From Tetramitus jugosus (taxonomy: Eukaryota; Protista; Heterolobosea): a stretch of DNA of 64,000 bases. The position numbers and the translations under genes were made by a program. Location: contig OW569389.1 in the NCBI GenBank assembly GCA_937625935.1, forward strand, positions 335,694 through 399,693, read 5' to 3'. The notes beneath the pieces are model-generated. The model searched no databases. It was not told the origin of the DNA and worked only from the letters and a program-made list of their open reading frames with translations. The stretch's first letter is position 1. Every line of letters begins with the position of its first letter. Below are positions 51,244 to 61,124 of this stretch, piece by piece.

Positions 51244-52644
51244 CTATGTCCCGAACATTCGATTGATTAACTTTTTCAGAGATAAGGTCACATTTTCGAT
51301 GAATGTTTGATCTTTTCTGAGCGTGTGGATGTCAGTCAAATTTGAAAGTGCTTTGTTGGTGATGAATTGTTGATTACAATGTCTCATATCCAGTGTATGA
51401 ATCCCGTCCAAATAGGAGAATGCTCTGTCTGTGATTGTTGTTTGAGTGCAGCAAAATATAGAAAGTGTGTGAATGCCTTTCAAATGAGAGAATGCACGAT
51501 CTGTGATTGATTCTTGATCACAACCACTCATGTAGAGTGTGTGAATACCTTCAAGATGTGAAAAAGCTTCATCTGTGATCATTGTTTGATTGCAAGCTGA
51601 CATATTGAGTGTATGAATGCCTTTCAAGTAAGAAAAGGCTTTGTCTGTGATTTGACGGCAATACACGATAGAGAGTGTATGAATGCCTGTCAAGTGCTCG
51701 AAGGCTTGATCTGTGATTGTTATTTGGAAACTCATATCGAGAGTGTGAATGCCTTTCAAATGGAAAAATGCTTTGTCTGTGATCTGATTACAATGGAGAA
51801 TAATCAGAGTATGAATTCCTTCAAGCTGTGAAAAAGCTTCATCTGTGATAGTTTGTTGCTTGCAGAGAGTCATATTGAGTGTATGAATGCCTTTCAAATG
51901 AGAAAAAGCCCAATCTGTAATTGTTGGTTGATTGCAATAGGCCATAGAAAGTGTATGAATACCTTTCAAGTGCTTGAATGCTTCATCTGTGATCGTTTTT
52001 TGGTTGCAATTAGTCATATCTAGTGTGTGAATGCCTTCTAGATGTGAAAAAGCCTCATCTGTAATCGTTTCTTGATGACAACGAATCATGTTGAGTGTAT
52101 GAATGCCTTTCAAGTAAGAAAACGCTTTGTCTGTGATTTGAGTACAATGACTCATATTGAGAGAGTGAATGCCTTCAAGATACGAAAGGGCATCGTCTGT
52201 AATTGTTGCTTGCCGGACACCAACCATATTAAGTGTGTGAATACCTTTCAAGTGTTTAAATGCTTCATCTGTGATCGTTTTTTGATTGCGATGACTCATA
52301 TCGAGCGTATGAATACCTTCTAAATATTGAAAGTGCACATTACTCACATTCTGATTCCGATTCAAGCTCACATTGAGCAATGTTCCTTTTCCCAGTGCAA
52401 AGAAATGTTCAATCTTTCGAGACAATAAATCACGTTTCAACGTTCTTCGCTTGTTGAACACGCATTGTTTGCTGAACTTGAATTGATTGAACCCTTTGCA
52501 AGTATAACTCAACTGTATCCATTCTCCAGTGTCAAAACACTCTAGGATCTTGGACCATGAATCTAGACTCAGTACCCAAAAAATCTCATTCATGTGATTA
52601 TTGGCATGCCTGCTTTCATGGGGAGTGGTTGTTGTCCTTCTCAT
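51244..52644 (-). CDS. F-box-like + LRR protein (about 14 GIHTL-type repeats of 21-24 aa)
   Basis: LSLDSWSKILECFDTGEWIQLSYTCKGF F-box-like motif; repeats xGIHTLxMxxCxQxTITDxAFxxL. Start at ATG 52644 chosen by comparison with the paralog. Confidence 0.85.
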   Translation of the reverse strand: MRRTTTTPHESRHANNHMNEIFWVLSLDSWSKILECFDTGEWIQLSYTCKGFNQFKFSKQCVFNKRRTLKRDLLSRKIEHFFALGKGTLLNVSLNRNQNVSNVHFQYLEGIHTLDMSHRNQKTITDEAFKHLKGIHTLNMVGVRQATITDDALSYLEGIHSLNMSHCTQITDKAFSYLKGIHTLNMIRCHQETITDEAFSHLEGIHTLDMTNCNQKTITDEAFKHLKGIHTLSMAYCNQPTITDWAFSHLKGIHTLNMTLCKQQTITDEAFSQLEGIHTLIILHCNQITDKAFFHLKGIHTLDMSFQITITDQAFEHLTGIHTLSIVYCRQITDKAFSYLKGIHTLNMSACNQTMITDEAFSHLEGIHTLYMSGCDQESITDRAFSHLKGIHTLSIFCCTQTTITDRAFSYLDGIHTLDMRHCNQQFITNKALSNLTDIHTLRKDQTFIENVTLSLKKLINRMFGT

Positions 52645-52903
52645 GGCTGTTTTGCAGCGGAGAATGGACGTACAACCATGGTTGCGCTTTTGTCGCGGTA
52701 TGGCGCTGATGTAACAGCCGGAGCAGGTGTAAGTATTTACGGGGTCTGACAGTTCTTTGGTTTTGATCATTGAAGTATTTGACACTGATGACGTAAGAAA
52801 TGGATCGCTTGATGAGTCGCAGCAAAAATAGAAAACTGAACACATTCTTCAACCGTCAATAGATGGAGAATCAAATTCCAGTAGTTGTACACATCTCATA
52901 AGT

Positions 52904-53145: not shown

Positions 53146-53625
53146 CTTCCGGAGTCGTTTTCTTCTTCACTTGAACTCAATTTGTACGCTGATTATTGTG
53201 TTCATTCACACCTGAGAAAGGATGTAAGATTGAAATTGGCGAGGTATTGTATTTCAGTACTCTGCGACATAGACCTTGTGCTTGTGGGACGGAATGAAAA
53301 AGTGGTCAGATTGCAACAATCATGAAAGTGAACGTGTGAGAATTTAATCTTGTTTTCATGCACAACCGAAGAGTTCATGCGACTTCCAGACACAATGTTT
53401 GTACTGCGTCCTTTTTTCGCTCCAAGATTAATTTCATTTTCATTGTAGCGCTTGAACCTCATGGTATGAACTTCTCTCGGTGTTGCTCAACCAGAATTCT
53501 CCGAAGCAACGGTTTTTTTCTTTCACGTTAAAAACCGCTAAAAACCGTTAAAAACAGGCACTTAAGAGGCAAACAAAGCCACCTAAGATCTGTGTCCAAG
53601 CCAATAACAAAACAACAGGAAAGAA

Positions 53626-56382
53626 ATGAAAAAACGTTTCCTGAGCGATGACGATGATGAAAACAAGAAGGAAGAGACAATCAAGCATAAGAAGATGAAG
53701 ACTAGCACACTTGAGATTCGTTCTACATTTGGCAGGGCTATATGGTCAAAAATCTTAGAGTTTTGTGACACTCCTGAATGGTTGCAATTGAGTTATACTT
53801 GCAAAGAAATCAATCAATTCAAATTCCATCGATCCTACATGCTCAACAAGATAAGAAAAGTGAGATATCATTGGGAGGGAATAGATGTTGAACATTTCTT
53901 TCGATTGGCCAAAGGAACATTGTTCAATGTTCACTTCAATGAGAATCAGAGTGTGACGGATAAACATTTCCAATTTTTGGAAAGCATTCACACACTTAAT
54001 ATGAGTGGTTGCAGGAAAATTACAGGTCGTGCATTCTCCTATTTGATTGGTATTCACACACTTAATATAAGTGGTTGCTGGAAAATCACAGATCGTGCAT
54101 TCTCCTATTTGAGTGGTATTCACACACTTGACATGAGTGGTTGCAGGAATATCACAGATGATGCATTTTGTCATTTGCGTGGCATTCACACACTTAATAT
54201 GAGTGGCTGCAGGAATATCACAGATGATGCATTTTGTCATTTGAGTGGCATTCACACACTTAATATGAGTGGTTGCAGCAATATCACAGATCGTGCATTC
54301 TCCTATTTGAGTGGTATTCACACACTTGATATGAGTGATTGCTGGGGAATCACAGATCGTGCATTCTCCTATTTGAGTGGTATTCACACACTTGACATGA
54401 GTGGTTGCTGGAAAATCACAGATGATGCATTTTGTCATTTGAGTGGTATTCACACACTTAATATGAGTGGTTGTATTTACCTCACAGATCGTGCATTCTC
54501 CTATTTGAGTGGTATTCACACACTTGACATGAGTGGTTGCTGGAAAATCACAGATGATGCATTTTGTCATTTGAGTGGTATTCACACACTTGACATGAGT
54601 GATTGCTGGAAAATCACAGATGATGCATTTTGTCATTTGAGTGGCATTCACACACTTAATATGAGTGGTTGCAGCAATATCACAGATCGTGCATTCTCCT
54701 ATTTGAGTGGTATTCACACACTTGACGTGAGTGATTGCTGGAAAATCACAGATGATGCATTTTGTCATTTGAGTGGCATTCACACACTTAATATGAGTGG
54801 TTGTATTTACCTCACAGATCGTGCATTCTCCTATTTGAGTGGTATTCACACACTTGACATGAGTGGTTGCAGGAATATCACAGATCGTGCGTTTTACTCT
54901 TTGGAGGGTGTTCACACCCGTAAACTCGGTTCATCATACGGTCAGAAGACGATCTCGGAACGATGGTATCACAGGAATCGTAAGATCTGGTCCCATAGTT
55001 CACGAGATGATTTTACTCCTCTTACTTGGACAAATTATTCACACAATGCAGTGGGAGCATTGAAGCCTAGTGAAGACAACGAAGAAAACACAAACAATGA
55101 GGGCGGTGAGGAAAATGAGGACGAGTTACTAAGGCAGCTTTATCGTCAAATTGAGAATCCAGAGAGATTTTGTCGCCAAATGTACGTTAGTCTCTCTAAC
55201 ATGAATCAATACATGATGGGCCAGAGTAGATATGGTCCAAGAGCAGCTTTACGCTCCTATCAGAACTACTCGTCAAAAACTAAAAGTTATATTGCCGACA
55301 ATGAACCAAGTGCAGATAGGGAAATTTTTCGAAAGTATATTTCTGGCCGGTATGTGGCAGATAACTATTTGAAGAGAATTGATTCGGCCCAGGATAAATA
55401 TTCTGAAATCATGGGGTATTCTGTTGAAAAATCTTGGGTCGTAGTTGAAGTAAACTGTCGTAATGCTTTGGACAAAATTGACGAAGAATTTACAAGTGAT
55501 ATTTTGGAGGGACATGTTCGAATTCGTTTTTTAGATCATGAAAAGTCAGCCCCACTCCATGACATAACTTGCCAGGATGAAATCGGTACCCCTGAATGTG
55601 AAGGTACTGTGGGTGCAGTAATCAAACACGAAGATGATATCTATGGACTAACTTGTGCCCACAATTGTCTTATTTTTGAGAAGAATACTGATGAGAGGCA
55701 AACCTTTCGCAACTTACAGAGCGCTGTTATCGCAAGATCACTTTATCAAAACGCCTCCATTGAGTTTGGAGAAAATAAGAACAAGGTTAGCTTGCAGGAA
55801 GCAGGCAACTGTGAAGTTTTCGATCCACGTCTTTATGATGCCGCGTTAATCAAGCTGCAGAATTTTAGGACTGAAGGTCTCACACAACATGAAATAGATT
55901 TGCCCAATATTGATTATTGTTCAGATGGTGACGATGTGAAAGAGGAGTTCTTGAAGGATACTTATTGTGTGCATATCGGAAGGAAGAACAACGCAACTGG
56001 AGAGAGGGAAGTTGCAATTGGCGTCCTAATATCTTGGGATACAGGGAGGAATCGAAAAGAGTCGTACGAAAAACAAATCCACATTGAGGGGAGGGACAAA
56101 GCATTTGGAAAGAAGGGTGACTCTGGTTCTTTGGTGTTTCAAGTGGGGTGGGAACAAGGTAGATTTCAGTTCTGGCCTATTGGTATTCTCCACGCTGTTG
56201 TGAAAACAAAAAACGCGTATGTGTTTCCTTTGGACAATTTTTTGAAAAGCTCTGGAAAGAACTCTGCGGGTCCAGACAACTTTGTTTATATCTATTCTGA
56301 CTTCGTTGAGAAATGCATCACGTCTCAACATAAGAGAGTACTCATTGATGGAATCAACGAAAACTTGTCCAATAATGACTAA
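53626..56382 (+). CDS. F-box-like + LRR + trypsin-like serine protease fusion protein (918 aa)
   Basis: AIWSKILEFCDTPEWLQLSYTCKEI; 14 x 22-aa LRR; protease motifs GTVG, GLTCAH (His 55660), YDAALIKL (Asp 55837), FGKKGDSGSLV (Ser 56122) and IGILHA. Confidence 0.85.
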   Translation: MKKRFLSDDDDENKKEETIKHKKMKTSTLEIRSTFGRAIWSKILEFCDTPEWLQLSYTCKEINQFKFHRSYMLNKIRKVRYHWEGIDVEHFFRLAKGTLFNVHFNENQSVTDKHFQFLESIHTLNMSGCRKITGRAFSYLIGIHTLNISGCWKITDRAFSYLSGIHTLDMSGCRNITDDAFCHLRGIHTLNMSGCRNITDDAFCHLSGIHTLNMSGCSNITDRAFSYLSGIHTLDMSDCWGITDRAFSYLSGIHTLDMSGCWKITDDAFCHLSGIHTLNMSGCIYLTDRAFSYLSGIHTLDMSGCWKITDDAFCHLSGIHTLDMSDCWKITDDAFCHLSGIHTLNMSGCSNITDRAFSYLSGIHTLDVSDCWKITDDAFCHLSGIHTLNMSGCIYLTDRAFSYLSGIHTLDMSGCRNITDRAFYSLEGVHTRKLGSSYGQKTISERWYHRNRKIWSHSSRDDFTPLTWTNYSHNAVGALKPSEDNEENTNNEGGEENEDELLRQLYRQIENPERFCRQMYVSLSNMNQYMMGQSRYGPRAALRSYQNYSSKTKSYIADNEPSADREIFRKYISGRYVADNYLKRIDSAQDKYSEIMGYSVEKSWVVVEVNCRNALDKIDEEFTSDILEGHVRIRFLDHEKSAPLHDITCQDEIGTPECEGTVGAVIKHEDDIYGLTCAHNCLIFEKNTDERQTFRNLQSAVIARSLYQNASIEFGENKNKVSLQEAGNCEVFDPRLYDAALIKLQNFRTEGLTQHEIDLPNIDYCSDGDDVKEEFLKDTYCVHIGRKNNATGEREVAIGVLISWDTGRNRKESYEKQIHIEGRDKAFGKKGDSGSLVFQVGWEQGRFQFWPIGILHAVVKTKNAYVFPLDNFLKSSGKNSAGPDNFVYIYSDFVEKCITSQHKRVLIDGINENLSNND
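53980..54903 (+). repeat. Coding tandem array, 14 x 66 bp
   Basis: Near-identical units encoding SGIHTL[N/D]MS[G/D]Cxx[I/L]TD[RAFSY/DAFCH]L. Confidence 0.95.
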
Positions 56383-56458
56383 GAACCCAATACTTTAGTA
56401 AGAACCCAATAAAAATTTGGAACTTTTCTTCCGTGTCTGACCCTCAGTAGCTGCTTCT

Positions 56459-56477
56459 GGGGTGGTTTGGGTTTGGG
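56459..56477 (+). repeat. Short interstitial telomere-like seed
   Basis: GGGGTGGTTTGGGTTTGGG, same orientation as the terminal telomere. Confidence 0.6.
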
Positions 56478-60209: not shown

Positions 60210-61124
60210 ATGAAGATTGGATATATACTATTGTTACTAAGCATTGTAGTAGCAACAGTCACTGCTCAATATGACTTTACCTACGATCAAGATCTGGTCA
60301 TAGGAGACACTATATATCATAACTGGTTGTATACTACTGGGATAATCAATCCTTGTCCCTCATGCATTGGTTTCAGCGTTACTTCTACACTAGTAGGACC
60401 AGATTCTGTTACAATCACTGCCAGTAAAAACAACAACTGGAACAATTTGGATGCTGGGTTTATCGAAGCCAATAGGAAAGAGTCTACACATTATACGATA
60501 GAGGTTAGAGGAGTTGCAAATGTTGGTGGACAAGCACAGTTTCAATCATATACATTATTCACTCTCAGATTCGACGAAGAAAGAATCTATTACAGATGTA
60601 ATGGTGTGAATGGAAACAATCCAGCTGTGTGTAGTGGATCAGGTGAATGTACAGATACAGACACATGTGCGTGTACAGAGGCACATGAAGGATCAAATTG
60701 TGAGATCTTATGTACGTCATATGATCAATGTGGTACATGCAATGGTGATGGTTCTACATGTTCACCACCAGAGCCAACCCCTTCACTATCACCTGTACCA
60801 GAACCTAGCTGTACGTCATACGACAAATGTGGTGTATGCAATGGAGATGGAACAAGCTGTGGGGAAGGTGTAGAAGAAGACATTCTCACTCAAAAGAGTT
60901 ACTGTTCTATCAGTCCATACTACGATGGGGCTCTATTAAGATATAACATGATCGTGTCAACATCGGCATTTACCGAGTACACCACGGATTTCCTACCATG
61001 GTGTACAGACAATGATATTATGAGTAGAAGCATCAGTGGATCTGCTCTGTTCGATACTACAGAAGGTATTCGTCATGTTTACTATTTAGGGTTGGGTTTG
61101 GGTTTGGGATTCCCTTGTCCCTAA
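60210..61124 (+). pseudogene. EGF/Cys-rich secreted or surface protein, 3'-truncated by telomeric repeats
   Basis: Signal peptide, EGF repeat (CNGVNGNNPAVCSGSGECTDTDTCACTEAHEGSNC) and two YDxCGxCNGDGxxC motifs. The reading frame runs into TTTGGG repeats (LGLGLGLG). Confidence 0.7.
61085..61108 (+). repeat. Interstitial telomeric repeat
   Basis: TTTAGGGTTGGGTTTGGGTTTGGG. Confidence 0.8.

Follow-up and report, generated by a model that had tools for sequence, protein, structure and literature searches.

Does the open frame of the heterolobosean amoeba Tetramitus jugosus that runs an F-box-like head, leucine-rich repeats (LRRs) and a trypsin-like protease together correspond to a real gene, and what could its product be doing? 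The window analyzed, 64,000 nucleotides of contig OW569389.1, had received an initial annotation in which these parts were described within one uninterrupted ORF of 918 amino acids. The frame is indeed open throughout, with an ATG start, no internal stops and an upstream in-frame stop six codons away, and it begins with MKKRF, a start that is common to the heads of its paralogs. From the N- to the C-terminus we found the F-box-like head, 14 LRRs, an acidic stretch, a middle domain of about 150 residues and a chymotrypsin-fold protease (Table 1). The parts and the order given in the initial annotation, including the acidic linker and the middle region, were confirmed, with an F-box weaker than stated.

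Table 1. Position of the features discussed in the text, numbered from the first nucleotide of the window.
Feature	Position	Strand	Basis or remark
Whole ORF	53626..56382	+	918 codons plus TAA
Family-conserved head, aa 25-120	53698..53985	+	Shared with paralogous heads
Divergent F-box-like motif, aa 39-64	53740-53817	+	Sub-cut-off Pfam F-box match
14 tandem 22-residue LRRs, cysteine-containing type	53986..54917	+	Tandem Repeats Finder, Pfam
F-box/LRR family C-terminal cap and fusion junction, aa 427-482	54904..55071	+	Alignment of six paralog tails and the sister copy
Acidic stretch, aa 483-500	55072..55125	+	From here on, similar to the protease unit's stand-alone relatives
Middle domain, aa 493-635, predicted helical bundle plus small alpha/beta part	55102..55530	+	AlphaFold, homologs
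Predicted NAL1-like chymotrypsin-fold serine protease domain, aa 650-889	55573..56292	+	Profile and fold searches
His679 codon, CAC	55660..55662	+	Family alignment
Codon 698, CAG here, TAG in sister copy L003	55717..55719	+	Alignment with L003
Asp738 codon, GAT	55837..55839	+	Family alignment
Ser833 codon, TCT, inside GDSGS	56122..56124	+	Family alignment
Internal telomere seed	56464..56477	+	82 bp past the stop codon; the sister contig is similar up to a point just before it

Tandem Repeats Finder resolved the LRR array into a 66-bp unit present in 14.1 copies, with 83% matches and without indels, and detected also a higher-order unit of 198 bp within it. The Pfam families LRR_5, LRR_8 and LRR_4 matched with E values from 5e-22 to 6e-17, in agreement with the 14 repeats originally counted. 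The last repeat had been described as breaking off abruptly (at EGVHTRKLG), and this turned out to be wrong. Residues 427–475 can be aligned to the C-terminal cap that is normal for the paralogous family, with an insertion of 16–17 residues, and compared to the sister copy described below, 33 bp are deleted in the cap and linker region. A truncated last LRR was accordingly rejected, since the alignment with the paralog tails shows the cap to be kept in the linker. Therefore, a nearly full-length F-box/LRR gene of the FBXL type was joined by its extreme C-terminus to a unit formed by the middle domain and the protease, and this unit had lost its own N-terminal module of about 95 residues.

The head belongs to a large family, with at least 90 paralogous F-box/LRR heads across the 26-Mb genome. 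Pfam recognized an F-box in 20 out of 22 paralog heads (best E 2.4e-5). The F-box-like motif annotated in the fusion protein is there, but its score (14.7–17 bits) lies under the Pfam cut-off of 20.5, the match spans profile positions 8–33 with the leading Leu-Pro missing, and a profile of the head family had no match in the PDB, solved F-boxes included. Like the FBXL proteins (Skp2, Grr1, AMN1-like), the protein has an N-terminal F-box-like helix motif followed by LxxLxLxxCxxITDxxF repeats. It differs from them in these features of the F-box and in the length of the repeat unit, 22 residues versus about 26, and we know of no FBXL protein that has a protease. Coupling to SCF through the divergent F-box, by putative binding to Skp1, is possible because a Skp1 gene (104.6 bits) was found in the same genome.

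The protease is absent from all the other paralogs of the head (at least 90), and none of the open frames that hold them exceeds 590 aa. An exhaustive protein search found no long relative, and a single-protein search of metagenome and viral contigs gave no relatives. The combination of F-box/LRR and NAL1-like protease was found nowhere else, and the architecture was rightly considered undescribed. The protease subfamily itself has one intact copy in the genome and very few relatives among 1.8 billion representative proteins. Relatives in which the protease unit stands alone have N-termini of other kinds. Most of the middle domain was modeled by AlphaFold with pLDDT of about 80–89. Homologs of it were identified (P0003, P0017 and L002), and a conserved short form without protease exists (C28 ORF, P0003). 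Pfam gave no matches for this domain in four homologs, and the only sign of NAL1_N ahead of the protease, a language-model feature lead of 0.79 in the ESM Atlas, was at noise level.

The annotation of the C-terminal part as a NAL1/Ssy5-like protease with a complete His/Asp/Ser triad held well. The motifs GTVGAVI (at 660), LTCAHN (at 675, with His679), YDAALIKL (at 737, with Asp738) and GDSGSL (at 831, with Ser833) appear in canonical order, fall on columns that are invariant, or nearly so, across 15 aligned family sequences and align to the NAL1 motifs. Used as a single sequence, the C-terminal 439 aa had no matches in Pfam or the PDB, nor did a word-indexed protein search produce any. The protein itself was not matched by Pfam Nal1_C even at E 10, or by Peptidase_S64. 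Two relatives do pass these cut-offs, P0012 that of Nal1_C (27.2 bits vs. 26.1) and the distant relative P0016 that of Peptidase_S64 (24.2 bits vs. 23.6). When a profile of 15 relatives was used, the best match was to NAL1 structures (E 7.7e-9), with the three catalytic motifs all aligned, and S1 and DegP came next. AlphaFold gave a model with pLDDT 69 from a 22-sequence alignment (only 33 without alignment), and NAL1 was again the top rank in Foldseek (1.8e-7, probability 1.00). With VIA-align, residues 650–889 reached Z values of 11–13 with 160–200 residues aligned at 3–4.6 A, the chymotrypsin-fold chains with Z ≥ 8 being 113, and a shape search of the ESM Atlas yielded trypsin-like and Nal1_C clusters. 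The blocks around His and Ser were modeled with pLDDT 84 and 89, that of Asp with about 64, and a low-confidence insertion of some 45 residues separates His and Asp in the model. A flexible linker, also of low confidence (aa 639–657), is a candidate self-processing site. The domain is thus predicted to have the chymotrypsin fold (clan PA) and to be catalytic, and by profile and modeled fold its nearest solved relative is rice NAL1, with classical S1 and DegP proteases more distant. Among the chymotrypsin-fold serine proteases it represents a rare branch of the NAL1/Ssy5-like kind.

NAL1 of rice and maize (PDB 7y77, 8pmg, 8has) is a trypsin-like serine protease, cytosolic or nuclear, that makes limited cuts in specific regulators, and it degrades TOPLESS-type corepressors (PMC12915138). 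Both proteins share the GTxG...LTxxH, DxAL, F..GDSGS..IG pattern and the chymotrypsin fold. However, identity is just 19–20% over about 190 aligned residues, the regions that precede the protease are unlike, NAL1 being devoid of F-box or LRR, and the fusion protein has the His-Asp insertion and lacks a Pfam Nal1_C or NAL1_N match. The yeast Ssy5 (S64) is a signaling endoprotease whose regulatory part is large and N-terminal; it becomes active once Grr1 marks this part for degradation, removal of the prodomain going through the F-box/LRR ligase SCF-Grr1 (PMC3145550). An F-box/LRR module and a protease of that kind are found here in one chain, whereas they are separate proteins in yeast, where Grr1 acts on the prodomain. 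Furthermore, the Peptidase_S64 cut-off is crossed by relatives of the fusion protease and not by the fusion protein itself. Purely by analogy, the fused F-box/LRR part might act on its own chain as Grr1 does on the Ssy5 prodomain. The literature offered nothing useful joining NAL1 with Ssy5, or on subtelomeric families of Naegleria.

Assembly errors arise easily in repeats and subtelomeres, and the members of the family mostly end shortly past the cap, as would be expected if the fusion were a mis-assembly or two adjacent genes sharing a frame. We have found, however, an independently assembled Logan contig (L003), recorded in two other samples and belonging to a sister lineage, in which the last LRRs, the cap, the middle domain and the protease follow each other in one frame with the same in-frame junction, at 93.6% nucleotide identity to this gene. 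Besides, the first Met past the LRRs (M519) is located inside the region conserved with the stand-alone relatives, and therefore a separate protease gene would have no start. An artefact of either type is highly improbable, and the locus contains a real, lineage-restricted gene fusion. The fusion arose before the two lineages parted, whether as species or as strains. The initial annotation had left room for a recent subtelomeric chimera, which is half right. The gene is subtelomeric, lineage-restricted and nearly neutral in its evolution, but the fusion was in place before the sister lineage branched off and is no artefact. The telomere, located 7 kb from the gene, consists of (TTTGGG)n and so matches the telomeric repeat described from Naegleria gruberi (PMC3622300); the amoeba is probably Naegleria-like. 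An origin of the DNA in a bacterium (a chlamydial symbiont) or a giant virus was rejected in view of this telomere and the size of the genome.

The sister copy also provides a reference to evaluate selection. The dN/dS was 0.91 (95% bootstrap interval 0.57–1.56, which takes in 1; dS 0.066) and cannot be told apart from neutrality, and the premature TAG of L003 sits between the His and Asp codons, so that Asp and Ser are lost. Family-conserved columns showed no excess conservation (4 of 41 changed, versus 34 of the 231 other columns; p = 0.28, not significant). In neutral simulations the open frame was kept in 7–25% of the cases for the whole ORF and in 18–42% for the aligned part. Together with the proximity to the internal telomere seed and the telomere, and with a gene in single copy for which the one paralogous protease unit has decayed, these data fit an evolutionary accident that is on its way to being lost, i.e., a rearrangement of an unstable subtelomere without selected function, the frame being open because too little time has passed. 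Against this stand the four indels within the ORF, all of them multiples of three (33, 3, 18 and 3), which argues for some constraint (with lengths free to vary, the chance would be about 1% or less), whereas the indels of the 100-bp 3' flank (19, 1, 13 and 6) include out-of-frame ones. The two copies do not differ in any catalytic motif, both lineages have the same junction and the 918 codons contain no stop. We consider an accident unlikely, if still a serious contender. The function is uncertain because of the near-neutral evolution and the premature stop in the closest relative.

The initial annotation had proposed an immune-receptor-like sensor-effector, in which hypervariable LRRs would sense a pathogen or foreign ligand and the protease would be released or activated, leading to defence or cell death. 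Pairings of a repeat sensor with a protease occur in other systems, and the large, rapidly diversifying LRR family, the fast evolution and the subtelomeric site are consistent with such a role. The repeat-sensor proteases of bacterial and fungal conflict systems likewise carry a repeat array and a protease in one chain. They differ from the protein described here, which has a eukaryotic host and an F-box; between the sensor and the effector part, Pfam detected no switch domain of the NTPase, STAND or any other type, and PADLOC gave no matches. In addition, the protease is found on one out of at least 90 family members and the sister lineage has lost it through a stop codon. We give the immune proposal, which was not sustained, a very slim chance.

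The best explanation, to which we assign a slightly better than even chance, is a real fusion that codes for a target-directed protease, in a young and dispensable gene. The protein would be an intracellular endoprotease in which the LRR solenoid captures a partner protein and delivers it to the protease, and the latter would make limited cuts in this partner in the fashion of NAL1 and Ssy5. The divergent F-box may be a tether to Skp1/SCF or serve to control turnover. The gene would be young, subtelomeric, dispensable and fast-evolving, with no conserved core function.

It is also conceivable, with a rather small probability, that the protein is a self-contained switch of the Ssy5/SCF-Grr1 type or a "proteolytic F-box protein", which would be the first of its kind. 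In that case the F-box/LRR part would bring to SCF either a target or the regulatory middle domain of the same protein, the ubiquitin-dependent loss of the inhibitory part would free the NAL1-like protease, and the partner bound to the LRRs would be cut. The short form devoid of protease could then be a prodomain-like regulator acting in trans. If true, this would point to an ancient functional connection of FBXL ligases with NAL1/S64 proteases beyond fungi and plants.

What can be claimed is limited by the nearly neutral evolution and by the stop in the sister copy, since the gene may be a brief evolutionary experiment. For the regulatory proteases NAL1 and Ssy5 it is only partly understood how they are targeted and activated, and the presence of F-box/LRR and such a protease in one natural protein is a "Rosetta-stone" hint of a wider cooperation between them. 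The fusion is also a compact construct for tests of LRR-directed proteolysis. The locus illustrates how, in an amoeba whose F-box/LRR family has expanded greatly, new domain combinations arise from a subtelomere.

The open frame of the F-box/LRR-protease fusion gene was found intact, as the initial annotation had it: a single frame of 918 codons, starting at the first ATG downstream of an in-frame stop 6 codons upstream. The 14 LRRs were recovered by Tandem Repeats Finder, which detected also a 198-bp higher-order unit, and by the Pfam LRR models (E 5e-22 to 6e-17), and the acidic linker is likewise present. All of the protease motifs quoted in the annotation are there and place a putative catalytic triad at His679, Asp738 and Ser833. 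The F-box-like motif stood only in part: a match exists, at 14.7–17 bits under the Pfam cut-off of 20.5 and over profile positions 8–33 only. A TAAAAAC(C/A)G motif, which may be a promoter element, occurs in three close copies ~70–100 bp 5' of the start codon.

Features of the fusion gene, its surroundings and related loci (window coordinates unless a contig of the genome assembly, G000, or another contig is named)
Feature	Position	Strand	Description
Fusion gene	53626–56382	+	918 codons
LRR array	53986–54917	+	66-bp unit × 14.1, 83% matches, 0 indels (Tandem Repeats Finder)
Acidic stretch	aa 483–500 of fusion protein		
Middle domain	aa 493–635 of fusion protein		
Deletion	55009		33 bp, in linker, relative to sister copy
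TAAAAAC(C/A)G motif	53528–53556		three copies
F-box/LRR paralog	51244–52845	minus	head-to-head with fusion gene
Tandem duplication	56369–56412		19 bp, TAAGAACCCAAT...
Internal telomere seed	56464–56477		GGTTTGGGTTTGGG, 82 bp past fusion-gene stop codon
Internal telomere seed	61095–61108		GGTTTGGGTTTGGG
Paralog of protease unit	L002 1189–1983 (G000:C28, about 416544–417338)		264-aa ORF, middle domain, no protease
Protease-subfamily fragment	L004 3024–3206	minus	GDSGA motif
Second Skp1-domain match	G000:C34:118146–118244	minus	58 bits, within 877-aa open frame

Single-sequence searches with the C-terminal half found nothing in Pfam, PDB or the word-indexed protein collection. When 1.84 billion representatives were scanned exhaustively with phmmer, six matches emerged: an 84%-identical fragment from a Logan assembly (P0001), P0002 and P0003, which match the middle domain, P0005 (metagenomic) and P0006 (from the annelid Owenia fusiformis), each with a full protease domain, and a spurious repeat protein. 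Profile searches brought a few more. In an alignment of 15 sequences the columns of GT.G, of the catalytic His, of the Asp in D.AL and of GDSG were invariant or near-invariant, and the resulting profile matched best NAL1 structures (E 7.7e-9, in a single alignment spanning all three motifs), followed by mite Der p 3, kallikrein, factor XI and DegP. An AlphaFold model from a 22-row alignment (mean pLDDT 69, pTM 0.57) retrieved NAL1 entries first in Foldseek (1.8e-7), then Streptomyces griseus proteases and DegP/DegQ. The 113 chains with Z ≥ 8 in VIA-align, over model residues 171–410 (aa 650–889), were all chymotrypsin-fold, and a shape search of the Atlas gave trypsin-like and Nal1_C clusters. 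Relatives, though not the fusion protein itself, score high enough to reach the Pfam thresholds for Nal1_C and Peptidase_S64. The proposed NAL1/Ssy5-like nature of the protease is thus borne out. The middle domain, for which the model is confident, consists of a bundle of helices and a small alpha/beta unit in that model, and it matched no family.

The last repeat had been described as breaking off abruptly; the LRR array is in fact not cut. The tails of six paralogs carry a cap (GIHTL.W...RD.AF[IV].KVV...S..T.L) with a stop within ~15 residues, and aa 427–475 of the fusion protein align with this family cap, with a 16–17-residue insertion after GVHT. The deletion in the linker removed 11 cap residues that are kept in the sister copy. 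From about residue 476 the fusion protein matches stand-alone relatives of the protease unit instead, the alignment entering them at residue ~95. These adjoining alignments show that a near-complete F-box/LRR gene was fused, right at its end, to a protease gene stripped of its own N-terminal module.

The sister-lineage copy lies on a Logan contig (L003) of 1676 bp, recorded identically in two samples, that spans in one frame the last LRRs, cap, middle domain and protease, plus 97 bp of 3' flank, with 93.6% nucleotide identity to the fusion gene. The same in-frame junction rules out an assembly artefact and indicates that the fusion is older than the split of the two lineages. The data are also compatible with a neutral chimera: dN/dS between the copies was 0.91 (Nei-Gojobori; dS 0.066, dN 0.060, bootstrap 95% interval 0.57–1.56), codon 698 of the sister copy, between His and Asp, is TAG, family-conserved columns were not significantly better preserved than the others (p = 0.28), and in neutral simulations 7–25% of trials kept the whole ORF open and 18–42% the aligned part, all of which argues against constraint. 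However, the four indels within the ORF are all multiples of three (33, 3, 18 and 3), against 19, 1, 13 and 6 in the short 3' flank, and all catalytic motifs are identical in both copies, pointing to some constraint. We read the fusion gene as young, dispensable and fast-evolving, with its frame here still under some selection.

The protease subfamily has no further member in the genome, where unrelated Trypsin_2 proteases occur. The paralog of the unit on contig C28 has a different N-terminus, possibly ubiquitin-like; two stops lie downstream of it, as does a faint trace of where the protease would begin. P0003 (assembly GCA_037189345.1) shares with it 53% identity and the same end point, indicating that the protease-less short form is conserved. 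L004, the contig encoding P0003, also bears a fragment belonging to this protease subfamily, ~2 kb from the P0003 coding region on the opposite strand. A stand-alone form on a metagenome contig joins a cysteine-rich N-terminus to the middle domain and protease, with frame changes that resemble introns. JGI metagenome contigs and IMG/VR yielded no close relatives. Beyond the amoeba lineage, the nearest full-length protease relatives come from an annelid (P0006, P0007, P0008 and P0009 of O. fusiformis), molluscs (a cluster from the Atlas) and a few contigs from metagenomes, a very patchy distribution for this NAL1-like subfamily.

The first 120 residues of the fusion protein have at least 90 paralogs in the genome, with open frames of 300–590 aa; 924 is reached by the fusion gene only. 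The fusion gene alone among these at least 90 has the protease. The 22 heads aligned have a mean column identity of 53% around W..I.EFCDT.EWLQLSYTCKGINQFKF. Individually, 20 of the 22 matched the Pfam F-box (best E 2.4e-5), their profile matched no F-box among solved structures, and a Skp1 gene is present (104.6 bits), making the F-box reading reasonable at the family level; in the fusion protein itself the F-box is an unproven candidate. The second Skp1-domain match may belong to a Skp1 fusion protein.

At its end the window (C46:335694–399693 of an assembly of 26.35 Mb in 56 contigs) runs into a long stretch of (TTTGGG)n, ~7 kb from the fusion gene. This repeat is the reported candidate telomere of the heterolobosean Naegleria gruberi (PMC3622300), and the genome is therefore probably that of a Naegleria-like amoeba. 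The two internal seeds flank a 4.6-kb segment 3' of the gene, and similarity to L003 stops at ~56455–56460, just short of the first seed. This suggests that the fusion gene adjoins an old chromosome break, 82 bp past its stop codon, that was healed by telomere addition, the distal DNA being added later. The tandem duplication takes in the stop codon and is missing in L003. The repeat unit of the head-to-head paralog measures 72 bp (24 residues), and its repeat identity, 66–72%, is far below that of the fusion-gene array; further neighbours are a protein kinase, a dual-specificity phosphatase and unannotated ORFs.

Nothing supports the immune-receptor-like sensor-effector role first proposed: neither a switch domain nor a match in PADLOC was found, the protease is confined to one member of the family and it is disabled in the sister lineage. 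In the inferred mechanism the LRRs would capture a partner protein and offer it to the NAL1-like endoprotease for limited cutting, with the F-box possibly anchoring the protein to SCF or determining its half-life. Such a mechanism is plausible because TOPLESS-like corepressors are degraded by NAL1-type proteases (PMC12915138) and Ssy5 is activated once SCF-Grr1, an F-box/LRR ligase, ubiquitylates its prodomain (PMC3145550). Each part is of a known kind; neither the exhaustive scan nor the literature searched revealed the combination in another protein, in agreement with the annotation.
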